From: Macrostomum lignano
Taxonomy: Eukaryota
Direction of reading: 5' to 3'
DNA length: 64,000 bases
Assembly: GCA_002269645.1 (NCBI GenBank)
Contig: NIVC01003832.1
Coordinates: 10,590-74,589, forward strand
Shown here: positions 712-24,897 of the stretch, piece after piece
Layout of the letters: every line of letters starts with the position of its first letter
Position numbering within the stretch: position 1 is the stretch's first letter
The notes under the pieces: generated by a model
Databases searched by the model: none
The model's input: only the letters and a program-made list of their open reading frames with translations
What the model was told of the DNA's origin: nothing
Translations under genes and position numbers: made by a program

Positions 712-909
712 TCACAGAGGCGGCCTGTGCATGAAGTTGGACAGAATCTCCAGAGGCAGCGGGAATATGATGGTGGAATTCTTCTCGGCCGAGATCGTGT
801 TGAGCGTCTGCAGGTAGCGCAGCTGCAGCGCGAACGGCGACTCGTTGATGACGTCGGCGGCCTCCTTCAGGGCCCGGGAGGCCTTCTGCTCGCCCTCAGC
901 TGCGATCAC
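712..909 (-). CDS. STOM: Stomatin last coding exon ([18 protein letters not shown]...HRPPL*)
   Basis: cag acceptor at 912-910, phase 0, TGA at 714-712; 198 nt. Confidence 0.93.
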   Translation of the reverse strand: MIAAEGEQKASRALKEAADVINESPFALQLRYLQTLNTISAEKNSTIIFPLPLEILSNFMHRPPL

Positions 910-3900
910 CTGAATTGTCGGTTCGGCTCTCGCTTTGCTGACTTTGTTAATCAATCCAAGAGAATTGTTTCCCGATTAAGTTTTATAGCAGCTTCTGTAG
1001 TCTTTCTGGACCATTTCATTCTGATTATTGATTTTTTGATTACTGTTTCTGGGCTGCTTTGCCAGCTCATTTTTCCTCTCAACCGAGCCGTACACTTCAG
1101 CCCAGCCCCCTGTCCAGATCCAAACTCCCAGCCCCAGCCCCTGCCCCAGCCCTAGTCCCAGCCTCAGCCCCAGTCCCAGCCCCAGCCTCAGCCCCAGCCC
1201 CTGCCCCAGCCCCAGTCCCAGCCTCAGCCCCAGTCCCAGCCCCAGCCTCAGCCCCAGCCCCAGCCTCAGCCCCAGCCCCAGCCCCAGCCCCAGCCCCAGC
1301 CCCAGCCCCAGCCCCAGACCCAGCCCCAGCCCCAGCTCCAGACCCAGCCCCAGCTCTCACCTTGGCGCGAGCCTCTCTCGCAGCCCCAGCCTCAGCCCCA
1401 GCCTCAGCCTAGCCCCAGCCCAGCCCCAGCCCCAGCCCCAGCTCCAGCCCCAGCCTCAGCCCCAGCCCCAGCCCCAGACCCAGACCCAGCTCTCACCTTG
1501 GCGCGAGCCTCTCTCGCAGCCTCGGCCTCGGCAGCCATGGCCCGTTGCAGTTGCACTGGCAGTCGGACATCTTTGCTGGAATGCGGAGTGGCGGAGGCGG
1601 GGCGGTGCGGACAGACGGGCGAAGGCGAGCGGTCGGCTAGGATGGGAAAAAAAGATCGAGCGGGAAACCGGGCCGCCGGCTACTGCGGCTGGAAGGAGTT
1701 TGTCGCAGACGCCGGTGCAGCCTTGGCCTGCCACTCTCTACACTTTCCCCTCTCCCTCCTCTCCACTTATCCCTCCTCCTCTGGGCCCCGGGGAGGAAGC
1801 TGGGCGACTGACTGATGGAGACCGTGAGCTCTAGTAAATAGAGAAGCGAGAAAGGAAAGTGCAAAAAAAAACTGAGTGGATGACTGGATGGAGAAGCTTA
1901 AAAAATGTGTTTGATGAAAAGAATAGAAGCTTTGAATATAGGTGATCAGGATACAGATTCTCTGGCTCAATGCAGCAACAACAAACAGCTTGGTAAGAAA
2001 TAAAAAGCCAGCAATGGTGCTTCGGACTTCCTGGATAAGCAGCGTCAGTTACAGGCCGCCAGTCAGTCCTGTGGCATGCTGGGCGCAAGCATCAGCAATA
2101 GCAGCTACATACAGTTGGAGAGGAAGGTGTTTAAAATAGCACGAAACTGTCGATTGCTATGGGATATAAGAGCGCTAAATTTTCCGGATTTTTTGGTTCA
2201 ATTTGTTTTACTGAAACTGTATAAAATGTGCAATTTTTTAACTGATCAGTAACTAAATTGCTGCTTAATTTTGAAGCAAATTATAAAAACAAGAGGAAAG
2301 TTGCACACTAAATGAGGTTAATATCCGATGGGAAAGGGCTTACAATGAGTGCGATTTCTAAATTTGAAAATGAAATCGAATTTGCGGTAACGGCTATTGG
2401 ACTGATCAACTGTAGGTCACTCCGACACCAGCTATTAGTCATAGTGACATACTGATCAGCTCTATAGTTCACTCCGACACTAGCTATTAATCATAGTGAC
2501 ATACTGACCTATACTGATCAGCTCTAGTTCACTCTGGCACTAGATATTGGAGTGACCTATACTGATCAGCTCTAGTTCACTCTGACACTAGATATTAGAG
2601 TGACCTATACTGATCAGCTCTAGTTCACTCTGAAGGTATGAAGAATTTGAAACTAGGGCACAAATTCGCACATTTTCCAGCACTACATCAATAATCGAGT
2701 ATTCATAAACAGTAAACAGAGATTAACCAGACCGCGAACGCGCCGTGCCGCCACCAGTGAAGCACAGTGCAATGCCAGCCAGTGCAGTGCAGGAAAGCCG
2801 CCACTGACAAGCCGGGTGTCGCTAATATCATCCCCTCGCCCCGAATTTCCCCACAGAAGCGACAAAAATAGCAGCTCAGAATTTGCTTTCCCTACGCCTT
2901 CGAGGGTCAGCAGTCCAGATCGTTTTCACTTACACCTCGACCCTCTCCACCTTGACACCCCAGGGGTCTGTGGCGTCGTCGAGGGACTCCTGCGAGTTGC
3001 GTCAGCCGTCGGAAGGAAAAAATAGGAAAAGTGGGAGGGGCGGGAGGGGCGTCGAGTTAAAATTAATATAATCAAAGTGTCTGAGACTTACACCTCAACT
3101 CGCTCCACCTTGACACCCCAGGGGTCTGTGGCGTCATCCAGCATGGCCTAGAATTGCAAACAGATTCGGGCGATGGGGGTGGCCTCCATCGAGTTCGATG
3201 AAGACTTTTGTTGGCCAACTGGCCGCTACATGCTTGATCTTGTGTCCACAGAGTCGGGCCTAGTCAAGATGGCATTCGATGGTCAGGGAGGGTGAAGCCG
3301 ATCGAGGGAGAGTCAGGGAGGGTCAAGGCAATCGAGGGAGAGTCAGGGAGGGTCAAGGCAATCGAAAGAGTGTCAGAGAGGGTCAAGGCAATCGAGGGAG
3401 AGTCAGGGAGGGTCAAGGCAATCGAGGGAGAGTCAGGGAGGGTCGAGGCAATCGAGAGATGGTCAGAGAGGGTCAAGGCAATCGAAAGGGTGTCAGAGAG
3501 GGTCAAGGCAATCGAGAGATGGTCAGGGAGGGTCAAGGCAATCGAGAGATGGTCAGAGAGGGTCAAGGCAATCGAAAGGGTGTCAGAGAGGGTCAAGGCA
3601 ATCGAGAGATGGTCAGAGAGGGTCAAGGCAATCGAAAGGGTGTCAGAGAGGGTCAAGGCAATCGAGAGAGAGTCAGAAGGGTCAAGGCAATCGAGGGAGA
3701 GTCAGGGAAGGTCAAGGCAATCGAGAGATGGTCAGGGAGGGTCAAGGCAATCGAGAGATGGTCAGAGAGGGTCAAGGCAATCGAGGGAGAGTCAGGGAGG
3801 GTCAAGGCAATCGAAAGAGTGTCAGAGAGGGTCAAGGCAATCGAGGGAGAGTCAGGGAGGGTCAAGGCAATCGAGGGAGAGTTAGGGAGGGTCAAGGCAA

Positions 3901-6900
3901 TCTAAAGATGATCAGGGAGGGTCAGGGCAATCGAGAGATCATCAAGGAGGGTCATTGCAATCGAAAGATGATCAGGGAGGGTCAAGGGAATCGAGAGATG
4001 ATCAGGGAGGGTCAAGGCAATCGAGAGATGGTCCGGGAGGGTCAAGGCAATCGAAATAGCGTCAGAGAGGGTCAAGGCAATCTAAAGAGTGTCAGAGAGG
4101 GTCAAGGCAATCGAAAGAGGGTCAGGGAGGGTCATGGCAATCGAAAGAGGGTCAGGGAGGGTCATGGCAATCGAAAGAGGGTCAGGGAGGGTCATGGCTA
4201 TCAAGTGAGTCAGGAAGGGTCAAGGCTATCAAGTGAGTCAGGAAGGGTCAAGGCTATCAAGTGAGTCAGGAAGGGTCAAGGCTATCAAGTGAGTCAGGAA
4301 GGTCAAGGCTATCAAGTGAGTCAGGAAGGTCAAGGCTATCAAGTGAGTCAGGAAGGTCAAGGCTATCAAGTGAGTCAGGAAGGGTCAAGGCTATCAAGTG
4401 AGTCATGAAGGTCAAGGCTATCAGGTGAATCCCCTAGTTTACGAGCTAGTATCTAGATGAATATGGATGGAAAATATCACTTCGGACACAAATATGACAA
4501 ACAAAACATACTTTATTGCTTGCTTCCTTTCTAGATAATGCAGAAAAAATTCACTTAAGCGAGTGCTGCTACACTGAGCCTGTCTCAAAAGCATCAAGCA
4601 AGCAAGAAAATTGGCCTGTTGCGGTAAAATCAAGGCAAAGAATAAATTTTGGCCTCCCCAGCAAAGGCAGCAAAAAAGGCAGGACGTCTTTGATGGCAAA
4701 TTTCCTGGTTAACACCCACTTTCAGTCTGAAAACGGATGCTGGCGGCCCAGTTCAGGAAATTGAACACGGAGTGTGGCGCCTCCGGCTTTGAGCCGCATG
4801 CAACCAATTTGTTCTCAGACGCGATGGATTGGAGCTTTGACTGGGCTTTAAATTGGACTGGCTAGCTTGCGTGTGACTGACAAGCTGAAAAAGGAGATGG
4901 ACTGGACACTGAAACGCTGCAGCAGGACTACTGTTTGAGCACTGAGAAGTGAGGTGAAAAAAAATTAAATTACTCGGTCGGAGAGGCGGCGGACGGAAGG
5001 TCCGGGATAAACTTTCCCCCGACACTTTTTCATGATCAGAAAAGTTAGTGCTGATGGCTGGACGGCTGGCGGGTAGCGCAGTTTGACCGTCACTAAAAAG
5101 GCAATCTTCCATGCACCCTGCAGCTGCGGCTGAGGGTGGTGGCCAGCAGATGACCGGGGAGGGCAATGTTTGCTCAGCATCAGTCACGCAAAGCTGACAA
5201 GCCTTCCTAGCACCAGCTGACGCCGCGCGCCGCCACCTCTGCGCCGCCCTCCCAGCTGCCCTGCTCTTCCTCATCATCGCCGCTTCCTCGTTGCCTCTCA
5301 CCCTGCATGCCCTGCCCCCTTCTTTCCGCCTGTCTGCTTTTTGTGCATTTCGCTTTTAGTTTGTAGAGTTGCCAGGCGGATCCATGCATAGTAGCGATGC
5401 GGACTGAGGCACAGACAGGCACTTCGCGCCAAGAAAAATGCTACACACTACAGTAGTTCAGTGGGCGCTTTCTCAGCCTGAGGCAGGGATGCCGTGAGAG
5501 CTGAGTAGGAAGCATGAGAATGCGTGTAGATACAGTAGACTGCAATGCCTTCGCTGTTTCACTTTTTGCCTCGAGCAACAGACCGATTTGCTGCCAGACC
5601 CGACAGTTTTAGCGATGCAATGTAGCAAAAAACGCAAAAGCAACTCTTTGAGACTGAGAGCAGCACCTCTTTGAGCTCAATTCAACATGGCATTATTAGG
5701 CATGAGAAATGGCAAGCACAATTCCTGAGCACTCGCCTGCATCATGTTACTGATGCTCTCGCGTTCCGACAGAATCTCGGACAGGTTCTTCGTGCCCAGC
5801 ACGTTGCGCAGGGTGGTGGCGGCCAGCAGGCGGGTGGACCTGTCCGCGTCTTCAACATTAGTTACGGCGATCACTGGGTTGTAGATTCTGTAGTACACGA
5901 CCGCGTCAACGGCCACCGTGACAGAGTCCTTCGTGAGCACCTGCACCGGACAGACAAAGTCAAGGATTCTTAGAATATTGCAAGCATTTCCACTTGAATA
6001 GAAAGCATGCACTGAAAATCATCTTGCACTCATTGCGGTGAAAAAAATATGATAAATCATAAAGAGAATGCGTCACGGCAAAAATGAACACTCGGTGTGG
6101 TACAGCCCTGCCCGCCTCTCACCCAGCCCCTTAGATCCGTCCATCATCGCGACGCGCTGCACAAGACGACGGACGACGGGGCTGCATTCACGCACTCGTC
6201 GCTCACACTTGAGAGGCCCAGATTAACGCGGCAGACTGAGAGGTCCCGGGTCAAAGGAGGAAGGCCTGACCGGATTAATGGATCGGTGTTGCATGAAGGG
6301 ACGACAGGCGAGAAACAAGATAATTCCCATTTGGGATTTGGGAAGGTGAAGGGATGATGATTCTGGTCACAGGCGCGGGATGGCCTAGGTGGTAATTGAG
6401 ATGCGGAATAATGAGGAGATTTGACTCTGGGAGATGGGGGGGCATCCCAGCCAGTCAGCCCGAGATGGCCGCACTATAGAGCAGGATGAAGATGTGCGCA
6501 AACTGCAAAGCTCCATCATTACTGTGCTGACACCCCAGCATCTCTGAACGGACTCATCATCAGTCAGTGTGCGGCCTATGCAAGCAAACACAGCTACAGT
6601 GTGTCCGCAATGTGATTCTATCACTCCCGTCTCTGTTAGTTCGTCAGCCAACCAAAAAGCCTGCCTGATCGGCTTTGCTTTCTTTTTACCAAATTCGACG
6701 CTCCATACTTGTCTAACGCCTGAGGTGGAGACGTTTTTGCGCTGGCTTTTTAATGGATTTTTTCTGTAAATATTCAGGAGTAGTCAGACCCTAGACTCTG
6801 GAACAAATCCTACTCACCTGAAGCCTGAAGTGCTCTCTTCATTCTCTCTCCCTCTCCGCCCTCTTCCAGACTTCACTGGCGTACCTTCCTGCATCCTCCT

Positions 6901-9900
6901 TCCCAGCAACCCCCCCCCGCCTGGCCAGCCCCGGTCTGGCAGCGGCGGAATTGATTAGAAAAATAAGACAGAAATGCGGAGTCCCCGCCCTCCACGCACG
7001 CGACCGGCCGACTCGCTCCGACACTGAGGGCCGAAGCCCGGCGGCCCCTCCCTCATGAGGCGCTCGCCGCGAAACAATGAATAATAAGAAATCCAATTAC
7101 CCCAGCGCGGAGCGGCGCCCTTCGGGAAATTTATCCTCACTTTATAGAACTGAACTGCCTTGATTGGCTTTGCTATTTCAGAAAATAGCCACTCGCGCTG
7201 CTATTATTTTTGTGACCGCTAAAAACCCCAGAAGTTAGTCCAGTCAGCTATTTTTGTAACCTTGGCCAGATGCTCAATGCATCGATTGCGCCATAAGACC
7301 TGAGTTCGATCCCCGTTGTGGCATACCTTTAATAACACTTAATAATCATATTTCAGACAATTGACATAAAAACCATGGCCTGTCGTTTGCTACTGTTGTC
7401 CATGGTCTGGCGTCCTGTCAAATTTTAGTTGTCTTGGGGGTCCTAGCTTTCGCAATTAGCAACCAGTTGAAGCTTGCTCACCTCCTGCGGCGGCACATCG
7501 AAGGTCACTGTGCGCAGGTCCACCTTGCGAATGATGTCCATGCAGGGCACAATGAAGAACAGGCCGGGGCCTTTGGCGCCGCCTTCGAGTATTCGACCAA
7601 GGCGGAAGATCACGGCCCGCTCGTATTCGGCCACCACCTGGTCAGAGTGGGAAGGTTTGGGTTGGTAGCATCGATTTCCCTACTGGTAGCTCTGCACCTG
7701 CTGATGCGCGCTAAAACGGGGTTGCTTCAGTGTAGCGCATCTTTGGGTTGCCAGCTCCTCCCCCAGTCCATCTGTGGGTTGCTAACACCTCCCCCAGTCC
7801 ATCTGTGGGTTGCTAACACCTCCCCCAGTCCATCTGCGGGTTGCCAGCTCCTCCCCCAGTCCATCTGCGGGTTGCCAGCACCTTTTCCAATTCGTTTGTG
7901 GGTTGCCAGCACCTCCCCGGTCCATCTGCGGGTTGCCAGCTCCTCCTCCAGTCCATCTGCGGGTTGCCAGCTCCTCCCCCAGTCCATCTGCGGGTTGCCA
8001 GCTCCTCCCCCAGTCCATCTGTGGGCTGCCAGCACCTGCCCCAACCATAACAAGCTTTCAGTGCTATCCGCTGTTAGGAATCGTTTCGCTGATTATCTGA
8101 TATTGAAAATTTAATTGAAACCAAACCCAGACAGTTAATTTTCATATAGCCCACGAATTCCTTTAACACTCACTCAGTATCTCGGTTCAATAAAATCATA
8201 ATATGTTTCTAAGCTATTTATAGAGCTAAATTGGAAGTCTTATTAGTTTGTGCTTACCTTGATGCAGAGGCACAATGACAGCGGTAGAGTCACCACAATG
8301 AGTGCGTACGACAGGATGATGAGGACGCCACCGCAGAATCCCATGCCCTGGGAGTCCCGCTGCTGGCCTGCGGTGGGCAATGGAGAGATGGGGTATTATA
8401 GGCACTGTTCCCGTGTTAATAAGTCTCGGGAATTTTGTTCCGTTAGGATTGAACTATAAGCATTTGAAAGTAGTCGTATCTTCGTGCCGTCTTAGTCTGT
8501 CTGTCTGTCTGTCTGTCTGTCCCAGTATACTCGTATTTATATGTGTCCATCTAATCTTTTTCCAATCGTACCATTGTGAATAATTTTGTAGCTTTATTAA
8601 AGTGCTCTCTAGCTATTTTTAGCGCAGTGATATAATTTTAAATAATATTCGCAACGTCAAGATTTCATTAAGGCCAACCCCTAAAGGGGGGAGTGTGCTA
8701 GTCCACTATACTAAAAACGGTTTGTCTCTATCTACAGATTTTAACATGTAGTTATCTGGAGAAAATAGATAAAATACAAGTTAAATAGCACATAAAAGTG
8801 TGTCTATCTTCAGCTGTAATAAAGCTTCCCAAAGAGCTCACTGGGATCACTCAGAGGTCCTGTGGCTGGCGGTTTCTCTCTACTTCGCATGGCGGCGGCG
8901 TGCATTATTGTCTCGCAGCTTTATTTGTTCTATCGTTTAGTATTTGTCACTTTAGAAGGCTCGCTGTTCTAGAGAGCGGGCCTCACATATTTATACTAGC
9001 TTCTGCACTTCTCGCTCTGACTTTGGATTGAACTCTGGGCAAATCGATGAGGTTGCCATATGATTGGACAGCTGGTCTGGCCCTATCCCTTATCCAATTT
9101 CGCTTGCCCACGACTTGGGTCCAAGAAGCTAAGGCCAGTGCTAAGGCTAAGGCGATCTGGCAGATTGGCAGCCCAACACCTGCTGCGAGCGACAAGTGAA
9201 AACAGGTGTAGAAACTCCCATCTACATTCTATTTAATAAACTTCCCTGTAGAAACTCAATACAACTATAAATTATCAACTATAAATTCGCTCCCTATTAT
9301 TGATAACTAAGTAGTATGGAAGGGAGAAAAGGTGCAAGGAGGGTGGAAAGAGATGGAAGGAGGGGGCGGAAGAGACAAGAGAAGGGGCGGAAGAGATGAG
9401 GAAGGGCGGAAGAGACAGGAGATGGGGGGCGGAAGAGACGGGAGAAGGGATCGGAAGAGACGGGAGAAGAGGCGGAAGAGGCGGGAGGGGGCGGAAGAGA
9501 CGGAAGAAGGGCGGAGGAGACGGGAGAAGGGGCGGAAGAGACGGTAGAAGGGGGCGGAAGAGACGGAAGAAGGGGGCGGAGGAGACGGAAGAAGGGGCGG
9601 AAGAGACGGTAGAAGGGGGCGTAGGAGACGGAAGAAGGGGGCAGAGGAGACGAAAGAAGGGGGCGGAGGAGATGGAAGAAGGGGGCGGAGGAGACGGGAG
9701 AAGGGGTGGAAGAGACGTGGTAATAGAAAATAGAAATAGCAATAGGAAATCGAAAAACTAAGATTATATTGCACACGACACCGGCCAATGTGCCAGTCAT
9801 TTTGCCTCTTCAGCTGGATGGCACTTTGAAAAGCAGTTGTGCTAACAAAAGTAAGTGGCGCCAATCGTTGCAGAGTGCCTTGAACCGAGAGCCGGTGCTT

Positions 9901-12900
9901 GCACAGCCGAAATACGTGGCTGCCAATTAATTGCTGAGCAAATCGATAGTGGGAGAGCACGCTTCACTGTGCGATAAGTCTCTGGGGTGATTTTTGTTGT
10001 GACAATTGGTTGTCCTTTGCTTCATATTGATTCTAGGCTGAGCATAGGCTGATCCTAAACTGTTTATTGACTGATCATAAACTGTTTATTGAATGATCCT
10101 AAACTGTTTATTGACTGATCATAAACTGTTTATTGAATGATCCTAAACTGTTTATTGACTGATCATAAACTGGTTATTTATTAATCCGAAACTGTTTTTT
10201 GATTCATCATAAACTGTTTATTGATTTTTTGTAAACTGTTTAAAGATTTATCATAAACTGTTTATTAATTGATCATATACTGTTTATTGATTGATCATAT
10301 ACTGTTTATTGATTGATCATAAACTGTTTATTGACTGGTCATAAACTTTTTATATTTTTATCCTAAAATGTTTATTGATTGACTATAAACTGTTTACTGC
10401 TTGATCCTAAAATGTTTATTGATTGACCATAAACTGTTTACTGCTTAATCCTAAGATGTTTATTGATTGACCATAAACTGTTTACTGCTTGATCTTAAAC
10501 TGTTTATTGACTGATCATAAACTGTTTATTGATTGATTCTAAACTGTTTATTGATTGATTCTAAACTGTTTATCGATTGATTATAAACTGTTTATTGCTT
10601 GATCATAAAGTTTTAATTGGCTGATCATAGAACCTTATTAGCTGTTCCAACTGACTAATAGACTTAAATAGAGTCAGCTTCGATCTAAGCTACACCACTG
10701 AATTTATTCACTTCATCATCCTACTAAAAGCAGCAATCAAAGCAAATTTCAGCTAGAAGCCGAGTTTTGAACCTACTGGGAGAGATGCCCGCGTGCGCCA
10801 CTGATGAAAGCGTTGAAGATTCGGGAGTTGAATAAAATTTTGTTCCAACTTCAAACAGAATTTTGATGCAAAGAAAGTAAACAGGGAATAGCACGCCCCG
10901 GCCAAGCGGGAACCCTCCCTTGAGCACTGCTCAGCGTGGTCGAACAAAAATGAAGTTGTTGGTATTCCATTATAAAATGCGAGAGCGGTGACAGAGCGTG
11001 TTTTTGCGTCAAGGGGGCTTCGCACAGTTTGCAGCAACAGGGGGTCGGGCGAAGTCGGCGACTTCAGCGACACTTCCCGCTCTCTCCCCAAAGCCTTTTA
11101 TCTCGCCGCAACTGTAGCGGAGGCAGTCGCTGGGGGGGTCAAGAAAACCCATTGATTCGCGCGATATCCAGAAAAAGAGGGATAGAGTGAGAGAGAGAGA
11201 GAGAAAGAACTCCAATGGCCGATTAAATAATTCACGGCTCAATCAACGAAGAATCGGAGGGACCACTCTCTGTGAGTGTGAATTGAACTGCTGGCTGTTA
11301 CAATCTCGATAGCTAGATCTAGCAGTCAATGCTGAATTGTTTTGGCATCTTCCTGTCACAGACTGGTTTGAACTAACTATATTTCAGCAAACCTGACTCA
11401 GGGGAGAGAGCTGAAGTAGGGTCAGGCGTAGACAAGTGGCTAATAGCGATAGACACCTTGAGAAGACCCAAGAGGCTAATAGCGATAGACACCTTGAGGA
11501 GACAAATGACTAATAGCGATAGACACCTTGAGGAGACAAATGGCTAATAGCGATAGACACTTTGAGGAGACAAATGGCTAATAGCGATAGACACCTTGAG
11601 GAGACAAATGACTAATAGCGATAGACACCTTGAGGAGACAAATGGCTAATAGCGATAGACACCTGGAGTAGACAAATGGCTAATAGCGATAGACACCTGG
11701 AGTAGACAAATGACTAATAGCGATAGACACCTGGAGTAGACAAATGACTAATAGCGATAGACACCTGGAATAGACAAATGCTAATAGCGATAGACTCCTG
11801 GAGTAGACAAATGACTAATAGCGATAGACACCTGGAGTAGACAAATGACTAATAGCGAAAGACATCTGGAGTAGACAAATGACTAATAGCGATAGACACC
11901 TTGAGTAGACAAATGCTAATAGCGATAGACACCTGGAGTAGACAAATGCTAATAACGATAGACACCTTGAGTAGACAAATGCCTAGTAGCGATAGACACT
12001 TTGAGGAAATAAGTGGCTAATAGCGATAGACACCTGGAGTAGACAAATGACTAATAGCGATAGACACCTGGAATAGACAAATGCTAATCGCGATAGACTC
12101 CTGGAGTAGACAAATTACTAATAGCGATAGACATCTGGAGTAGACAAATGACTAATAGCGATAGACACCTTGAGTAGACAAATGCTAATAGCGATAGACA
12201 CCTGGAGTAGACAAATGCTAATAGCGATAGACACCTTGAGTAGACAAATGCTAATAGCGATAGACACTTTGAGGAAATAAGTGGCTAATAGCGATAGACA
12301 CCTTGAGAAGACAAATGACTAATAACGATAGACACCTGGAATAGACAAATGCTAATAGCGATAGACTCCTGGAGTAGACAAATGACTAATAGCGGTAGAC
12401 ACCTTGAGTAGACAAATGCTAATAGCGATAGACACCTGGAGTAGACAAATGCTAATAGCGATAGACACCTTGAGTAGACAAATGCCTAGTAGCGATAGAC
12501 ACTTTGAGGAAATAAGTGGCTAATAGCAATAGACACCTGGAGTAGACAAATGACTAATAGCGATAGACACCTGGAATAGACAAATGCTAATAGCGATAGA
12601 CACCTGGAGTAGACAAATGACTAATAGCGATAGACACCTGGAGTAGACAAATGCTAATAGCGATAGACACCTGGAGTAGACAAATGACTAATAGCGATAG
12701 ACACCTGGAGTAGACAAATGATTAATAGCGATAGACACTTTGAGGAAGTAAGTGGCTAATAGCGATAGACACCTGGAGTAGACAAATGCTAATAGCGATA
12801 GACACCTGGAGTAGACAAATGCTAATAGCGATAGACACCTGGAGTAGACAAATGCTAATAGCGATAGACACCTGGAGTAGACAAATGCTAATAGCGATAG

Positions 12901-15900
12901 ACACCTGGAGTAGACAAATGCTAATAGCAATAGACACCTGGAGTAGACAAATGCCTAGTAGCGATAGACACTTAGAGGAAATAAGTGGCTAATAGCGATA
13001 GACACCTTGAGAAGACAAGTGGCTAATAGCGATAGACACCTGGAGTAGACAAATGCTAATAGCGATAGACACCTGGAGTAGACAAATGCTAATAGCGATA
13101 GACACCTGGAGTAGACAAATGCTAATAGCGATAGACACCTGGAGTAGACAAATGACTAATAGCGATAGACACCTGGAGTAGACAAATGCTAATAGCGATA
13201 GACACCTGGAGTAGACAAATGCTAATAGCAATAGACACCTGGAGTAGACAAATGCCTAGTAGCGATAGACACTTAGAGGAAATAAGTGGCTAATAGCGAT
13301 AGACACCTTGAGAAGACAAGTGGCTAATAGCGATAGACACTTTGAGGAGACAAGACGCAAAGGTGCGATAAACCAGCGATGATCTAAAGGTGAATGACTG
13401 TTGAAAATCACGAATAGCCCGTTGATATTCAAAATCAACAGCAAACTCGGACTGAGACCGCTCTCTCGCCGCCCTTCACTCACCGTAATCCCTCGGACTG
13501 CCCTGCTGCTGCTTGCGCATGCTGCCGACCCGCATGGGGCCCATGACCGGCACCTGCTGGTGTGACGGCTCACTTGGCTCAACGCTGGCCATGCTTTGCA
13601 TGCAGGAAGAATATCCTTGTCGCCCGTGACACTTGCCTCCTCCCCGTGAGGCGGTGACTGGAGTATAGGGAGACGGGTCCTTAACTCCTTTTTTAGGCGG
13701 AAAAAAGAAGAAGAAATGCTTCTAAACTGTTCTTCGCCTGCTGCTCCTGGGCTGAATCGACTCAGCCTTGGCTAGTGCTTGCTTTTGAGAGGATTTAGGG
13801 GGATCTGCCGGGTGGCCGGAATGGCTGGGTGGGAGAGAAGGACAGGGGCGGCCGCCTCGGCACCCAGTTGGCTGGGAGAGAAAGCGAGAGACAGAGAAGG
13901 CCGGGACTGCCGCTGCTGTGGAGTCTCTTCTTGAAGTGCGCCAGCGGTAGCAGCAGCAGCAGCAGCAGGGCGGCAGAAGAGCCATTTTTTCTGGAATTTG
14001 ATTTTCTTGCATTTGACTCCCCTATCGCTCAGGTGGAGAGGAGGGGAGACCAAAAATGGGTGGGGCAGAACAAGGGAGAGTTGCGAGGCAAAGACTCAAG
14101 CCATTCTGGGGGGGAAGTTATGTCCGGAGGAGCGGGCACAGAGCGGCCACCGTCCTCCCCACCTGCACTAACGCGCTATTGCTCCGATTTCCTGTCACGT
14201 GATCCTAAACTGCTGCGCTCCTCTCCGCGGAACTCACTCCCCGCCCAGTGGGCGCTCACGCAAGTCGCGGTCGTCAAGAGAGGGGGGAGGGCAGAAAAAA
14301 AGATAATTGTTAGAGAAAAACGCGATCTTGTTTTTCCTTTGGAAACAGCTGCCGCCGCAGTGGAGGAAGAGGAGGTCACACGGGGACTCAGCTGCGTTCC
14401 CTGGGTGTGCGCAAACTTACTCACCTGTCCCCATCAGTCTGTCCTCCTCTTTTTAGCCACATACGCGTATTTGCAGAACCAATTCATCTGAAATTAATGC
14501 TCCATGGGGGGAAAGAGGTTTTTTGCCCAAGTGCTGATGAGGTTGGACCAATTAATTTACTGCCCCACCGCCCCCGACCGCGGCTCTGAAAGAAGAGAGG
14601 CGGGAGTTGCTGGAATATTGAAATGCATCTCATATCAGAGTTGGTCTGTTTGGCCCACTCTAATAAGATAGATCATTGTATTCTGGTTCATTCGACTGCA
14701 AATCGGGGGGGGGGGGGAGTTGGGGGGATTAGAGGGAATAAGCAGCATACGAAATGATAAGTATGGGCTTTGACAATGTCTCTAAAAAATGCCCCGGCCA
14801 CGCGGGCAAAATGATTTCCTCTGCAGCTGCTTCGGCTATATGGTAAAGAAGGGAACTCTGCTTCAACTTCGACTCACTCTGAGCATGAGCTCCATATCCC
14901 AGAGCACTATCATGGCTGTTGCTAGGACAGCATTGACTCAACCCGCCCCGTTCTCTCTGAGCCACTCTAAGCTCATTCCAGCCTTCCCAGTATGTTTTAG
15001 TGGCTTAATGCTTAAATTACTCCGGGCTGGGGTATCGGCGACCCCCTGCCGATCCTCACAGCCGGTCTTGAGTGGCGACGTGAGCTGAACTTTCCCCCAT
15101 GCGAGCCCTCTCCCGCCCCGGCATTCTGTCCTCTGTGCGGCCGCCCGCATGGCAACTCCTCACTATCCTGGCAAAGATGAGGCGCAGAGGCTGAAACCTG
15201 CTGATTTCGCACTTAGAAAGTTTCTTTTCTGCCGCTGCTTCTTTGTTGGCGCAGGCGGAAGCGCAGAATGGCGCTTCAGACGGATCGAAGATCTCGCATT
15301 CACTTGGCTGAACTGCCAGGACTCAACTGGGGCGCATAGCTGTCAATCAATACTTGCGGGGGCAGCTGGTTTCTCTCTGATCGGCAGCGCGCCTGAGCTG
15401 AGCTGAATTAGAGCAGCGAGCTTCACGCAGAGAAAGTGAGAAGTGCTGAGCGAGGGAAAGCTCAACATAGAATAGGCTGCACTGGCTGCATAGCTGCAGC
15501 AGATTAAGTTGAGAGCTAATCCGCAACATCAAGTTTCTGCAAGATTGCTGACTCTAACCCTCTAGCAAACACACCCACACACACACAGTTCAGCAACTTT
15601 AGTTCTCCAACAGGGTGCTTGGAGCAGAACTGTTTTCCTGTTTTCAAATCCAGCAATAGACCATCGAAAAATATGATTTTCGCTAAAATTTTTGCTACGA
15701 GTAAAAACTTACTGGCTCGGTGGGGCTGGAACAAACAAGATTTTTAACTCCATCTAGTTGCGTGAAATAACAAGAGGTTGTTAGCTCCATCTGGGTGCGT
15801 TAACCAACAAGAGGTTGTTAGCTCCATCTGGGTGCGTTAACCAACAAGAGGTTGTTAGCTCCATCTGGGTGCGTTAACCAACAAGAGGTTGCTAGCTCCA

Positions 15901-18900
15901 TCTGGGTGCGTTAACCAACAAGAGGTTGTTAGCTCCATCTGGGTGCGTTAACCAACAAGAGGTTGCTAGCTCCGTCTGGATGGGTGAACCAACAAGAGGT
16001 TTTTCACTCCATCTGGATGCGTGAACCAACAAGAGGTTGCTAGCTCCATCTGGATGCGTGAACCAACAAGAGGTTTTTCACTCCATCTGGATGCGTGAAC
16101 CAACAAGAGGTTGCTAGCTCCATCTGGATGCGTGAACCAACGAGAGGCTTTTCACTTCATCTGGATGCGCATTCAAGACGTGCGAGTGAGGGCTCCAGAT
16201 TAAGGCACTAAGTGGTGTCATAAAGATGGCGTCATATCAATAAAGATATATGAAGTATTCTATTCACGGTGGCTCCACGTATTATACTTTTAAGGATTCT
16301 TCTAAGCGAAAATTGGTTTTTTCAGCAGCCGGCTTGCAGAAGTTCGTATTTTCAGGGTAACCTGACTGTACATTGCAGTCTAATTTTTATTAAACTGAAG
16401 CTCCGCTTACCATACTTGTCCATGCGAGTTCTCGCAAGTTTTCCAAGACACAACGGTCTCCAAGAGCTTTTGAGCGCGTGTCCCAGCCAAAAACTATTCT
16501 CAACTCAACGCGGTGCGTGGGCTTTTTAGTGATCGCGTCCAATGCCACTTGTAAGACCGACTGCAGCTGACAGTTGCCTACTTGTTGAGCAGGCAGCTCA
16601 ACTGTCAAGAACTCAGCGAAATAAATTGTATGCCTTTGTCTAGACACGAATCATACTCAGGGCAACATGGCCAGTGGTTTTCAGGGGTGCTCGAGCTTGG
16701 GGTCAATAATTGACGGGCTTTTATATGCAGCCTGGCTTCGCGCGACTCCAACCAGGCCTCCATCCAACCCCGAACTCCTGAGCGCTGAAATACGACGCCC
16801 AAGGTAATGCCGGAGACGACTCGCGATGCAAGTTATCCTGTCGTGGCGGAGTCCGCTTTCACCAGCGCCTCCCAGCTCAGAGCGGGTGGTGGGTGCTCAA
16901 AATTCGAGGCAATGCAAGAAAAAACTTTCTCCGAGGAACAGAAATTGCGCCGCCAGAAAAATTACCCACCCCCACTCGTTTCGCGTTCTCTCTAACCTGA
17001 ATTTAGCTTTTAGCGTTTTACAATATAATGAAAAAAGTCTTAATGCACCGCTATGAGTAGAATTATGCGCGTATAGATATTCTTTTTTTCTTTCTCAGTG
17101 GGCTACTGTTCTTGGTTAGGCCAAGCTCTATGCATCGCTGTTCATCAGGAGCCTGACGTTTTGAAAGTCGGAGAAAATTTACACCCTGGTCACCCGGGCG
17201 ACATCAGGGGCTTAGTGCAGGGGTTGGCGAACTCCGGCCCGCGAAGCCTCTCTATCCGGCCCTCGGGTCCTTTGAAACTTCACAATATAGCAATCCGGCC
17301 CGCTCAGGGCTTGTCTTTTCTCAGTTGTCTTTTCTCTAATCTCATATCTTCTCTTTTCTCTAGCCTCTCCCCTCCCTTCTCTCTCTTCTCTCCTCTCCTC
17401 TCGTCTCCCCTCCCTTCTCTCTCTTCTCTCCCTTCTCTCCTCTCCTCTCGTCTCCCTTATCTCCCTTCTCTCCTCTCCTCTCGTCTCCTTTCCCTTCTCT
17501 CCCTTCTCGCCCTTCTCTCCTCTCCTCTCCTCTCCTCTCCTCTCCTCTCCTCTCCTCTCCTCTCCTCTCCTCTCCTCTCCTCTCCTCTCCTCTCTTCTCC
17601 CCTCCCTTCTCTCCCTTCTCTCCTCTCCTCTCATCTCCTCTCCCTTCTCTCCCTTCTCGCCCTTCTCTTCTCTCTCCTCTCCTCTCCCCTCCCTTATCTC
17701 CCTTCTCTACTCTCTTCTCCCCTCCCTGATCTCCCTTCTCTCCTCTCTTCTCCCCTCCTCCCTTCTCTCCTCTCTCCTCTCCTCTCCCCTCCCTTCTCTC
17801 CCTTTTCTCCTCTCCTCTCCTCTCCTCTCCTCTCCTCTCCTCTCCCCTCCCTTATCTCCCTTCTCTCCTCTCTTCTCCCCTTCCTGATCTCCCTTCTCTC
17901 CTCTCCCCTCCCTTATCTCCCTTCTCTCCTCTCCTCTCCCCTCCCTTCTCTCCCTTCTCTCCTCTCCTCTCCTCTCCCCTCCCTTCTCTCCCTTCTCTTC
18001 TCTCCTCTCCTTTCCCCGCCCCTCCCCTCCTTCTCTCCTCTCTCCTCTCCTCTCCTCTCCTCTCCTCTCCTCTTTTCTCCTCTCCCCTCCCTTCCCTCCT
18101 TTCTCTTCTCCCTCCTCTCCTCTCTTCTCCTGTATTTTCTCAAGTCCTCCACTTATCTCTCTTCTCTATTCCCTCACCTCTCTCCCCTCCTCTGGTCCGC
18201 AGTCATGCGCTAGATTCTCAATCTGATCCTTCAAGTAAAGTTTGCCGACCCCTGGGTTGGCGCCAGCCCCCAGAAAACCGGCTAGCTAGTAGCGACATAG
18301 CTAAGCCATTCAGAATGTCACACAAGTCAGTCGCATTATATGCTAAAAAGACAAGAGTTGCTAATTCAGTTAAAAAATCTCCATACTTCATACCGGATTT
18401 GCGCGAGTTTCACTTAATGACTGCACCAGTGCATCAATTTTGATAATTGCTGCTCCAATTAATAGCTCTGAATTCATCCCTATTATCTCTCTAGCGCTAC
18501 TCATGGAATCTCTATGTAATTCTATCTAGATACATGCCGTGTTCTTAATCCAGGCCCTACACAGTGTAGCATCAGACATCAACAGCCTCATCGACAAGCT
18601 GCAAACACATCGTTGTCAAACAGAGAGAGAAGTTTGGAGCGCAGAGACGGGAGACACGCCCTGAACGAGTCAAGGATGCATAGAGAGCAGCAGGAGAGCT
18701 GCTCCGAGCGTATATTAAAGGGAATCATGGTGACAGCAGGCCCATGGCGTCGGGAGAGCCATCAATCACGGCGCTGAGGGCGAGGGCGAGGCTCCGCCCT
18801 CGAGCTAGTAGTTGCCCAGCGAAAATGAGAGAGAGAGAGACCGACCTGCTCTCGATCGAGTCGGACAAGGGGGAGCCGAGCGCTCTCCGCCTTCTCGCAA

Positions 18901-21900: not shown

Positions 21901-24897
21901 CTATTGGCGTGGCGCACTGCAACTGCAGGCTGCCTTATTGCACGGCCCGAGGCCTGTACGCCAATGCTTCGGGCCCACTGGTCCGTCCCTAATAAACTTG
22001 AATAATTCAAAATAAGCGAAAGCGCCAAGCTCAGCTCAGCTCTCCAGCTGTAGTTACTATGCAAATCCCGGGATGCCCTCGCTGTCATGTCCGATAAATC
22101 GGCAGGCAGGCAGGCAGTGGGGTGGGGGGTGGGTCAGCCTTCATCTCTTATCATTTTCCCAAGCCAGATTTCTCCAGACGCTCGATGCAGATTTCGCATT
22201 CCCAGAAGCGACGTACGAGCGTAGTCTGCCGTTTTAAATTGAATTTTTTAAGTGAATCCCATCTCCTAAATTCAGTTTTGAGCCCCAGTTTCTGCCCTTG
22301 TTCTTGGCCCAGATTGCCTCCCTAGCGGTCTTGGCTTGCCAGCCTGGTAACTGACAGCTCTGCATGGCTGCATTTGGCTGGCTGTGTCACTGACAGCCAC
22401 TTCTTTGCGATTGTTCGGTCATTGAGAGTCACTTCTATGCAACTGTTCAGTCACTGACAGTCACTTCTATGCGATTGTTCGGTCACTGAGAGTCACTTCT
22501 ATGCGATTGTTCGGTCACTGACAGTCACTTCTATGCGATTGTTCGGTCACTGAGAGTCACTTCTATGCGATTGTTCGGTCACTGACAGTCACTTCTATGC
22601 GATTGTTCGGTCACCGAGAGTCACTTCTATGCGATTGTTCGGTCACTGAGAGTCACTTCTATGCAACTGTTCAGTCAGTGACAGTCACTTCTTTGCGATT
22701 GTTCGGTCACTGAGAGTCACTTCTATGCAACTGTTCAGTCACTGACAGTCAATTCTTTGCGGCTGTTCAGTCACTGACAGTCACTTCTTTGCGGCTGTTC
22801 AGTCACTGACAGTCACTTCTTTGCGATTGTTCGGTCACTGAGAGTCACTTCTTTGCGATTGTTCGGTCACTGAGAGTCACTTCTATGCGATTGTTCAGTC
22901 ACTGACAGTCACTTCTTTGCGACTGTTCAGTCACTGACAGTCACTTCTATGGTTCGGACTTCTCAGCGATGAAGGCAAGTGGCAAACAACTTACTGACCC
23001 ACAGAAACGAGAGTCCGGGTACATTTTGAACGCGTGAAGCTGCAACTTCAGACTTGCTCACTATAAGCATTTTTCTAGTTAAGAGCCAGGCAGAGAATAG
23101 GGCAAGCGGGGCAGGCACATGAGTGCCATAGAAAGCGGATTAGAAGAAGCACTCTGGGTCAGACCAAGTGTGGCTCTCGATTATCATGGCCCATCATTTC
23201 TAAAAGTGGTCTCGCTGTCCAGCCCAGAGAAAGTTTATCCCCTACGCCCTGGAAATGGTTGCAATAAGCAAATGAGGCAGGCCGGCATTGGCCCCGGCTG
23301 CAGCCAAAAGGCCGATTCCTGGGGGAAAAGTTCTCCTATTCCTCCCTGCCACTCCACTCCGCCTTCTCTACCCAGTCCGTGCAGCTTCTCCTCCCACAGC
23401 ATTAAAATATTGGCTTAATGACCGTCCCAGCCGGGCAACCATCATTCTAGGAAAATGAAAACTGCAAAACATTTCTCCCCTGCCGCTGCAACTGCAGAGT
23501 AAAGCATTGCATGCTCGGAATGCAGCTGCGGCTCTTCATCATCATTTACAGCGTAGAGACGGAGACTGAGCATTCGCTGTCTGCCTTGTCTCTCTCTCCT
23601 TCTTTCCTCGTCTCTATTGCCTACCCAGTAATAAAATAGAAATTTGAGGGAGGCAGAGGCAGACAAGAGGAGAAAGTAGCTGTAGTAGGACGCAGCTGCT
23701 GGGAAATGTCTGCTCGGTTTTGCGAGCACGGGTTCAGGTTCTCGAGTATCCGGCAAGATCTAGCCTACGCGGCTCAGTTGAAGAAACTTAACCGATGACA
23801 AATTTTGAGAGTCCAGCAGGTGGGACGGTCGAAATCTGGGGATTTTCTAGGGGTTTTTCGAATGCCCTGGATACTCTGGATGAATAATTATTATAGTCAG
23901 TTTTTTTCTTCTTCCCAGGGAAGCTTTGCGTGCTGACGCAACTTAGGCAACAGTGAAGCCGCGAGGCATCGTGTGTGCAAATACGATTCGCACAGACTTC
24001 GCACGCGCTCTATACGCCGTGTTGGTTGGCAGGCCTTCATTAGCAAACACATCTCACCGAATTACGAATGCGCATCAGAAATACAGAGTGGGGCATAGCG
24101 GACAGGAAATGGACTTGGATTATTACTAATTTGCCCCAATTGACAGACAATTTAATTCTATTACTCTCATTTCTGGGGCCAACATCGCTGTTAGTGTTAC
24201 GACTGCATGCGGCGGCCCAGAGCAAGACAGCGGAAGCAGGCGCATTTAGACGTTAATACTATAGCTATAAATAATAAAAAATAAACAGCAAGATGAGAAT
24301 CGATACGACTGTGCCCACTTGTGCTCCTGCATCTGCGCCACGGGCAACGGCGCATTCTATAAGCACTGAACGAACAAGGAACAGCGACACAAAGGTTGGG
24401 TGGCTGTTGGCTGCATGTCAGCGGCACAAAGAAGGAAGCCTGAAAAATTTGTGTGTGTGCGGCACGACTCGCTCTCGGGGGTAAAAAGAGGACAGGCATA
24501 GTGATATTCTTATGGAAAATGGGAATTGATAGAGAGAGAGAGACATAGGTAGGGCCGGAAGGTGCGATGAGGGTTTTGAGGGAGAAGATTACTCATTCAC
24601 ACGCACACAATTAAAGCTAATGCTAACAATGCACTCAGCAAGACCTGCTCAAGACAGCTTGTCCTGAGCGATCTTTTATTAATTATGCAGTGTCGCTTCT
24701 CAAGACACCCCATGGCCCTCCTGGCTCCGACTGCGCGTCAAACTGACGTCAAGCCTTGACAACCAATAGACCCTGGGGACTCATCAGTAATCCAGTGTGT
24801 GCTCCCCCCCCCCGAACTTACTGAGCAGGTCGATCTGCGGATCCACGACCGAGTACTTTCTCATCCTGGTGTGCGCCGGCTTGGCCTCTGGCGCCAT
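712..24897 (-). CDS. STOM: Stomatin / MEC-2-like SPFH (band 7) membrane protein, multi-exon gene, about 292-306 aa depending on first exon
   Basis: Exons join in consistent phase: [24822-24897 or 13484-13601] > 8258-8367 > 7482-7637 > 5737-5940 > [3092-3147 or 2934-2989] > 1497-1575 > 712-909. Translation contains stomatin hallmarks: GFCG..hydrophobic hairpin, [83 protein letters not shown]. The symbol is a family-level call. Confidence 0.93.
1095..1490. repeat. (CCCAGC/CTCAGC)n hexamer-type repeat in the last stomatin intron
   Basis: Direct reading. Confidence 0.92.
1497..1575 (-). CDS. STOM: Stomatin exon [26 protein letters not shown]
   Basis: cag acceptor 1578-1576, starts with 1 nt completing GTC; donor AAG|gtgaga; 79 nt. 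Confidence 0.93.
2405..2632. repeat. Minisatellite, unit about 43-45 nt (tatactgatcagctctagttcactc...)
   Basis: About 5 degenerate copies. Confidence 0.8.
2934..2989 (-). CDS. STOM: Stomatin duplicated exon B ([19 protein letters not shown]), putative mutually exclusive
   Basis: cag acceptor 2992-2990, gtaagt donor from 2933; 56 nt; same phases as exon A. Confidence 0.85.
3092..3147 (-). CDS. STOM: Stomatin duplicated exon A ([19 protein letters not shown]), putative mutually exclusive
   Basis: tag acceptor 3150-3148, gtaagt donor from 3091; 56 nt. Confidence 0.85.
3275..4425. repeat. Minisatellite, 30-nt unit (ggtcaaggcaatcgagggagagtcagggag) grading into a 27-28-nt variant
   Basis: Direct reading; source of ORFs 3264-4264. 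Confidence 0.95.
5737..5940 (-). CDS. STOM: Stomatin SPFH core exon ([19 protein letters not shown]...SNMMQ)
   Basis: cag acceptor 5943-5941; 204 nt = 68 codons; ends CAG|gcgagt (GC donor), the position required by alignment to stomatin MQ-x-x-LD. Confidence 0.9.
7482..7637 (-). CDS. STOM: Stomatin exon [15 protein letters not shown]...VPPQE
   Basis: cag acceptor, GAG|gtgagc donor, 156 nt = 52 codons. Confidence 0.93.
7745..8042. repeat. Minisatellite, 31-nt unit (cctcccccagtccatctgcgggttgccagct)
   Basis: About 9-10 copies. Confidence 0.9.
8258..8367 (-). CDS. STOM: Stomatin membrane-hairpin exon ([36 protein letters not shown])
   Basis: cag acceptor 8370-8368, phase-1 start, AAG|gtaagc donor; hydrophobic stretch with the conserved Pro. 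Confidence 0.9.
9340..9720. repeat. Purine-rich repeat (gggcggaagagacggaagaa-like)
   Basis: Direct reading. Confidence 0.88.
10045..10625. repeat. AT-rich minisatellite, 22-nt unit (ctgatcataaactgtttattga)
   Basis: Direct reading. Confidence 0.9.
11430..13350. repeat. Minisatellite, 33-34-nt unit (gacaaatgctaatagcgatagacacctggagta)
   Basis: About 55-60 copies, contiguous, no unique spacers. Confidence 0.95.
13484..13601 (-). CDS. STOM: Candidate stomatin first (or upstream) coding exon [39 protein letters not shown]
   Basis: ATG 13601, 39 codons + 1 nt, G|gtgagt donor; phase 1 matches exon 8367. Confidence 0.65.
15765..16170. repeat. Minisatellite, 37-nt unit (aacaagaggttgttagctccatctgggtgcgttaacc)
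   Basis: Period 37 checked (15781 to 15818). Confidence 0.92.
17325..18190. repeat. Polypyrimidine (TCTCC/CT)n low-complexity tract
   Basis: Direct reading. Confidence 0.93.
19530..19880. repeat. Degenerate repeat of gggggaatcc(cat/tct) modules
   Basis: Direct reading. Confidence 0.82.
20728..21465. repeat. Minisatellite, 42-nt unit (gatctatccatgtagatctgcagttattacagctagagctct)
   Basis: Gives the 14-aa periodic ORF 20714-21481. Confidence 0.95.
22390..22950. repeat. Minisatellite, 32-nt unit (gtcacttctatgcgattgttcggtcactgaca)
   Basis: Direct reading. Confidence 0.93.
24822..24897 (-). CDS. STOM: Candidate alternative first coding exon of stomatin [25 protein letters not shown]
   Basis: gccATGg Kozak-like start, 25 codons + 1 nt, A|gtaagt donor; phase 1 matches exon 8367. 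Confidence 0.6.

Follow-up and report, generated by a model that had tools for sequence, protein, structure and literature searches.

Tandem 56-nt exons in a stomatin/MEC-2 gene of the flatworm Macrostomum lignano as a likely mutually exclusive pair

Mutually exclusive exon pairs that arose by tandem duplication are known from Mhc and Dscam in Drosophila, from unc-32 and let-2 in C. elegans, from human ATE1 (exons 7a/7b) and OGDH (exons 4a/4b), and from exons 2/3 of alpha-tropomyosin. Here we describe two tandem exons in a stomatin/MEC-2 gene of the free-living flatworm Macrostomum lignano, found in a stretch of 64,000 nucleotides (nt) of contig NIVC01003832.1 (assembly GCA_002269645.1, positions 10,590 to 74,589 of the forward strand), which we call the window and whose own numbering is used below. 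Like the members of known pairs, the two copies, exon A and exon B, are adjacent homologous exons of equal length and phase whose splice sites are conserved. Both code for one and the same structural element, and including both or neither breaks the reading frame. Whereas the members of most known pairs differ at many residues, the Macrostomum swap concerns only two. The locus also departs from the known systems in that the use of one exon at a time is something we infer, and in that a docking/selector RNA structure was not found. On balance, we think it likely that this tandem duplication works as a mutually exclusive pair.

Within the same protein family, C. elegans mec-2 shows splicing under the control of MEC-8/RBPMS, with isoforms that have distinct cell-type use and of which two are needed together, probably as heteromers (PMC8934639). 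The mec-2 gene thus offers a precedent for isoform mixing in stomatin oligomers. It is unlike the Macrostomum gene in what is spliced: an alternative 3' splice site changes the C-terminus and there is a large cassette exon, but no exon is duplicated and the SPFH domain is unchanged. The original prediction for this locus cited mec-2 as a precedent, which it is as an alternatively spliced stomatin gene, but of a different kind. Full-text literature searches turned up no earlier account of duplicated or exclusively spliced exons in stomatin genes, nor any of mutually exclusive exons in flatworms or Macrostomum. As far as the searched literature shows, the stomatin family and free-living flatworms are new hosts for exclusive exons of this type, and the sole prior trace is a pair of RefSeq isoforms from the gastropod Babylonia, to which we return below.

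Anatomy and reading frame of the exon pair

Both exons lie on the minus strand, exon A at 3092..3147 and exon B at 2934..2989, with an intron of 102 nt between them (2990..3091) and an A-to-B offset of 158 nt. Each is 56 nt long and encodes 18 residues plus the first 2 nt (GT) of the following codon. Exon A starts with Ala-Met (AM) and is the copy used in annotated transcripts of this type of gene (type 1, defined below); exon B, the alternative copy, starts with Glu-Ser (ES). The acceptors read ...ttctag/ and ...tcgcag/ (the slash marks the splice junction), both exons end in the donor GT/gtaagt, and both are in frame. The copies are identical at 46/56 nt (82%) and at 16/18 residues. Half of the 10 nt differences fall in codons 1-2, and the remaining five fall in 4 of the other 16 codons, where all are synonymous. 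The flanks, compared over 60 nt on each side, show 23-28% identity, which is the random level. An in-frame pair of 56-nt exons that are 82% identical and carry splice sites is far beyond chance. No third copy or relic of the exon was found within the gene, which holds exactly two copies.

These measurements bear out the original prediction in every particular of the pair's coordinates, equal length, phase, acceptors and gtaagt donors, as well as its claims that the differences over the 16 shared codons are synonymous and that the flanking introns are unrelated. Its description of the splice sites was correct as far as it went, but it overlooked that the donor at 5737, at the end of the upstream constitutive exon E4, is a GC donor (CAG/gcgagt). 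E4 (5737..5940, minus strand) encodes VLTKDS...SNMMQ and ends in phase 0, and its GC donor occupies 5736-5731.

Joining E4 (5940-5737) to either A or B and then to the downstream constitutive exon E6 (1575-1497) gives an open stomatin of 288 amino acids. When A and B are joined together, the frame shifts and a stop arises at the E6/E7 junction; when neither is included, the frame shifts and a stop arises in E7, the last coding exon. The frameshift expected from including both or neither is therefore found in each combination, and the both-exon and no-exon products lack the wall helix, the cap helix and the C-terminal barrel, the parts from which the stomatin cage is built. Because 56 is not a multiple of 3, the full protein is encoded only by mRNAs that carry one of the two exons. 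All of the sequence-level features from which mutually exclusive exons are predicted, namely length, frame, homology, splice sites and adjacency, are present here; we use the prediction scheme of Pillmann, Hatje and Kollmar in the form given in PMC3923563.

We propose that the GC donor of E4 would join the acceptor of either A or B, after which the GTAAGT donor of the chosen exon would join E6. Each resulting mRNA would then contain one exon and encode a full protein with either AM or ES at residues 179-180. The choice may be regulated by cell type or stage, and the two isoforms may differ in function.

Paralogues, selection and competing explanations

The M. lignano genome contains three old paralogue types of this gene, with pairwise synonymous divergence (dS) of 0.9-1.1 and almost no amino-acid change. 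Type 1, found in the window and in contigs L003 and L004, has the AM and ES exons and a GC donor upstream of them. Type 2 (contigs L001 and L008) combines an NM exon with an ES exon, both of them bounded by ag/gtaagt sites, and has a GT donor upstream. Type 3 (contig L002) has an NM exon only, and again an upstream GT donor. The donor sequence CAG/gcgagt (window 5731-5737, minus strand) is the same in L003 and L004, and the corresponding site reads gtgagt at L001 17511 and L002 15489. In L002, to which model P0004 belongs by type, the NM exon stands at 17582-17637 and the downstream intron runs to 21010; local alignment across this 4.1-kilobase (kb) intron revealed no exon-B relic above noise. 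Either B was lost from L002, or L002 branched off before the duplication. Since dS is near 1 for each of the three pairs, it does not order the events among the paralogues. The original prediction looked to relatives for the pair: at dS ~0.9, the type 2 paralogue keeps both exons, but L002, Schistosoma and Spirometra have a single one.

Comparison between paralogues provides the evidence for selection. Types 1 and 2 have a dS of 0.91 over the remaining coding sequence, and their introns around the exons are unalignable save at the splice sites. Nevertheless, the 18 residues encoded by their B exons are identical, all 9 nucleotide differences being synonymous; had as few as 4 of these substitutions fallen on a copy evolving neutrally, the chance of an unchanged B peptide would be 0.003. 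The acceptor and GTAAGT donor that belong to B are likewise conserved between the two types although the surrounding intron is saturated. For the A exon, types 2 (L001) and 3 (L002) differ by 12 synonymous and 0 non-synonymous changes, and types 1 and 2, whose A exons differ at 7 sites, by 5 synonymous changes and an Ala/Asn exchange at the variable first residue. As judged from these substitution patterns, both copies have been held by long-term purifying selection.

The original prediction reached the same conclusion from the synonymous differences between A and B within the gene. The conclusion stands, but that argument for it is weaker than was supposed. In the window gene, A and B share an identical core of 33 nt (3103-3135 and 2945-2977, minus strand), whereas the same stretch in type 2 has 8 differing sites. 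This core mixes A-like with B-like states. It has probably been made uniform by gene conversion, and for that reason the A/B comparison within the gene is confounded as evidence of selection; the comparison between paralogues is much the stronger. Outside the shared core, the B-specific ends (5' GAGTCC CTC GAC and 3' AGG GTC GAG GT) match those of the type 2 B exon with synonymous changes only.

Transcript models show that both kinds of exon are used. The GenBank gene models for M. lignano were built from RNA-seq reads assembled on the genome with StringTie/TACO, along with a de novo transcriptome (PMC5730564). In the type 1 models P0006 and P0008 the AM exon is present (...NMMQAMLDD...), and in the type 2 models P0007 and P0121, which come from different contigs, the ES exon is spliced in. 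A UniProt model of type 2, P0005, equals P0007 apart from N179E and M180S; that is, it uses the NM exon. Annotated messages thus include both exon versions, and there is no doubt that the B exon can be spliced in. None of the transcript-based models compared contains both exons, and the sole model with neither, P0013 in UniProt, comes from a different annotation. P0013 reads through the GC donor, uses a GT 17 nt downstream and skips A and B; it appears to be an error of gene prediction due to that GC donor. The locus illustrates how the annotation of a repetitive, partly duplicated genome can hide alternative exons, with one form given per gene copy and a GC donor misleading ab initio models. 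For the window gene itself, the conservation of both exons suggests that B is used there and that the two exons are mutually exclusive.

Several observations weigh against such switching within one gene. Two homology searches did not return an ES form of the type 1 gene, and exact look-ups with three N-termini among 15 billion proteins did not find one. The transcript-based GenBank set has one form per paralogue, AM for type 1 and ES for type 2. For type 2, the NM form stems from another annotation, so that the case for switching within one gene is indirect. L002, Schistosoma and Spirometra manage with a single exon, gene conversion between A and B could help an unused copy look intact, and any mechanism that would block A-to-B splicing and so enforce exclusivity is hypothetical.

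Much of this would also be expected if the paralogues divided the labour between them, such that type 1 always used A, the L001 type always used B, and B in the window gene were an unused but undecayed copy, perhaps kept partly intact by conversion from A. The AM models of type 1, the ES models of type 2 and the missing ES version of the window protein all agree with such a division; the identical A/B core would be a trace of the conversion it invokes, and L002 lost B or never had it. We nevertheless regard this explanation as rather unlikely. Conversion within the core does not account for the B-specific ends outside it, which are conserved with the paralogue's B through synonymous changes only, or for the acceptor and GTAAGT donor that B keeps within a saturated intron. 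With 3-4 of the 9 changes placed on a neutral branch, the probability of zero amino-acid change is 0.003-0.014. The A exon of the paralogue, which would be the unused copy there, is intact by the comparison with L002 given above, and a model of the paralogue that uses this NM exon exists (P0005).

It is far less probable that exon B is a regulatory 'poison' exon, which would matter as RNA, its inclusion together with A shifting the frame and lowering protein output. The A + B combination does create a frameshift and a premature stop, both exons have strong GTAAGT donors, and any obstacle to joining A to B would be hypothetical. The peptide of a poison exon need not be conserved, yet B keeps 18/18 residues over a dS of ~0.9 with 9 synonymous changes, and the B exon of the paralogue is used alone and in frame in two transcript models. 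The stop, moreover, coincides with the last exon junction, a position poorly suited to junction-dependent nonsense-mediated decay. Finally, local mis-assembly of a duplicated exon, which might be suspected in M. lignano assemblies that are highly repetitive and redundant (PMC5730564) and in introns full of minisatellites, can be rejected, as the window shares the identical arrangement with two independent GenBank contigs, L003 and L004, another two (L001, L008) carry it in diverged form, and the copies differ at 10/56 positions and have unrelated flanks. A mutually exclusive pair therefore remains the explanation that we prefer.

The same exon in other animals and the residues it swaps

In two parasitic flatworms, Schistosoma mekongi and the tapeworm Spirometra, the homologous 56-nt exon is single-copy and its product starts TM... 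and AM..., respectively. Two tandem 56-nt exons are found at the homologous place in the caenogastropod Babylonia areolata (L005, 53308-53363 and 57688-57743). The RefSeq isoforms X1/X2 of this species (P0044, P0079) differ only at residues 176-194, where a 19-residue version in one stands against TSLDECTDPWGIRVERVE-I in the other. The land snail Candidula unifasciata, the other of the two species in which the gastropod pair was sampled, has both gastropod versions in the same order (L009, 19448-19503 and 22184-22239); annotation as two isoforms is given for the Babylonia pair only, not for that of Candidula. In the gastropods the upstream copy is divergent (LDEC.DPWGIRVERVE-I; 5 residue differences) and the downstream copy is canonical. 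A protein search with a 62-residue query around the divergent Babylonia exon returned short fragments only and no new isoform information.

The gastropod pair is like the Macrostomum pair in that the homologous 56-nt exon, in the same phase, has been duplicated in tandem, and in that both copies have intact splice sites. The pairs differ in layout: the divergent copy of the gastropods lies upstream and carries five residue differences, whereas Macrostomum B lies downstream and differs only at its first two residues, and the intron between the copies measures 2.7-4.3 kb in the gastropods compared with 102-263 nt in Macrostomum. Judged by its sequence, the gastropod pair is old, with a signature of its own that is absent from the Macrostomum B exon. 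Because of this absence, and because the parasitic flatworms have a single exon, the comparison suggests two independent duplications of the same exon, one in flatworms and one in gastropods. A single ancient pair blurred by gene conversion in Macrostomum is a residual alternative.

We advance as a tentative idea that the same 56-nt exon independently became a duplicated pair used one at a time in at least two spiralian lineages, and that the end of the last SPFH2 helix together with the next strand is a tuning surface. A possible dating, about which we are no more confident, would have the macrostomid pair predate the paralogues at dS ~1 and the gastropod pair predate the caenogastropod-heterobranch split.

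The predicted Macrostomum isoforms differ only at residues 179-180, Ala-Met with exon A and Glu-Ser with exon B, and this AM/ES difference falls, as had been foreseen, inside the SPFH/Band_7 domain. Across 30 homologues, 179 and 180 are the sole non-conserved positions of the exon, and they are flanked by the invariant M177, Q178, L181 and D182. Flatworms have x-Met at these positions. The second of them is mostly Ser or Thr in molluscs, arthropods and vertebrates; of the 103 motif matches found among 120 hits, SS accounts for 35, TS for 23 and TM for 16. As read from this alignment, the ES form thus brings back the common Ser and, through its Glu, contributes a negative charge. A predicted model of moderate confidence (mean predicted local distance difference test score, pLDDT, of 66, locally 79-88) has 179-180 within a helix spanning residues 170-188, which is followed by a strand at 190-201 and then by the long wall helix. 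The model places the two residues midway along the last SPFH2 helix, just ahead of the last SPFH2 beta-strand. The sequence E-S-L-D-D fits an acidophilic kinase motif, which makes the Ser a putative phosphosite. The equivalent human residues, S176 and T177, are not discussed in the structural papers on human stomatin, and we claim no interface role for them.

Stomatin-family proteins assemble into cages of 16 subunits, which give order to patches of membrane and modulate channels, mechanosensory and other, and the surfaces that give them specificity are poorly known. A two-residue swap long kept in a flatworm and the snails' own, separate swap at this exon point to a small patch of SPFH2 as functionally sensitive. 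If the two exons are indeed used in alternation, stomatin cages could differ in composition or in their specificity for partners or channels, perhaps under phospho-regulation through the Ser of the ES form. Mixed oligomers are possible as well, as with MEC-2A and MEC-2E in C. elegans. Transgenesis is possible in M. lignano, so isoform-specific reporters and forced-isoform animals are feasible.

Enforcement of exclusivity, the host gene and its surroundings

The sure minimum that would keep the two exons apart in functional protein is the frameshift together with the loss of aberrant products. In alpha-tropomyosin, a distal branch point enforces the exclusive use of exons 2/3. For OGDH 4a/4b, steric enforcement of exclusivity by a distal branch point is likewise described (PMC7969005). 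The A-B intron of the window gene resembles those of distal-branch-point systems: it is short (102 nt) and free of AG for 91 nt, and it has branch-point-like motifs 20, 29 and 35 nt from the donor of exon A, followed by a pyrimidine tract of ~40 nt. It is unlike those systems in that its branch-point positions are putative, and in that a proximal CTGAC is also present, 12 nt from the acceptor and with no pyrimidine tract after it. We consider a distal-branch-point block in the window gene, for which these are candidate motifs, conceivable but somewhat doubtful. The A-B intron of type 2 is 263 nt long with an AG-free zone of 40 nt, and the gastropod introns measure kilobases; for this reason the layout would be specific to the window gene and not a general mechanism.

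Simple steric exclusion by intron length was rejected, as 102 nt suffices for splicing if the proximal branch point is used. Competing RNA structure in the window gene appears improbable. The best duplexes found in a search for docking/selector pairing in the window were no better than shuffled controls (z-scores of -1.5 to +1.0), and the lone outlier, a duplex in L001 (z = -3.7), was not reproduced in the window, where the local fold had z = -1.5.

By sequence comparison, the host gene is a stomatin/MEC-2 orthologue. Its protein is identical (100%) to M. lignano BOX15_Mlig015086g3 over an aligned 93% of its length, and the closest named relatives, at 75-84% identity, come from flatworms, parasitic ones among them, from molluscs and from arthropods, crustaceans included, and go by the names MEC-2/stomatin or 'band 7 protein AGAP004871'. 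The Band_7/SPFH domain (Pfam PF01145) spans residues 59-230 (E = 9.4e-40). The 16-subunit cage of human stomatin has been solved (9oh9; PMC12344292), and this 16-mer aligns with residues 17-282 of the Macrostomum protein (E = 3.9e-122), an alignment that takes in the hydrophobic hairpin, the wall and cap helices and the C-terminal region. By analogy with the family (PMC8934639, PMC12344292), the Macrostomum protein may modulate channels, mechanosensitive or other.

On the minus strand of the window, the gene stretches from ~24.9 kb to 0.7 kb. Its first coding exon comes in three alternatives, and six more coding exons follow. The distal first coding exon (24822..24897, MAPEAK..) supplies the N-terminus of P0008, a second (13484..13601, MQSMAS..) supplies that of P0006, and the proximal one (8842..8905, MHAAAM..) encodes 21 residues plus 1 nt. 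Each of the three has a GT donor in phase 1, and two are used by GenBank models on different contigs. Exon E2 (8258..8367), which encodes the membrane hairpin, ends in ...CLCIK, and E3 (7482..7637) ends in ...VPPQE. Downstream of the pair, E6 (1497..1575) finishes the Val codon opened by A or B and adds 26 residues, and E7 (712..909) encodes VIAAEGEQ...FMHRPPL and the stop. All of these exons are on the minus strand.

An exact repeat of 37 nt (window 1349-1385 and 1485-1521, minus strand) lies inside an array at 1127-1490 and comprises the last 25 nt of E6, the E6 donor and 12 bases of the intron. A (GGGCTG)n microsatellite surrounds it. The donor thus recurs 136 nt downstream, where splicing from it would shift the frame. 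The introns of the gene are packed with minisatellite arrays, which have periods of 22-168 nt and reach 1.9 kb; they are located at 3282-4422, 7738-8043, 9348-9717, 10050-10629, 11428-13353, 15729-16169, 17350-18130, 20729-21465 and 22386-22951. One array, just upstream of exon A, consists of a 30-nt unit repeated 38.7 times. Elsewhere in the window, two open reading frames of 613 amino acids (38149-39990 on the minus strand and 39923-41764 on the plus strand) lie head-to-head with an overlap of 68 nt. Both give identical Pfam matches to a reverse transcriptase and a GIY-YIG nuclease domain, a combination typical of Penelope-like retroelements.

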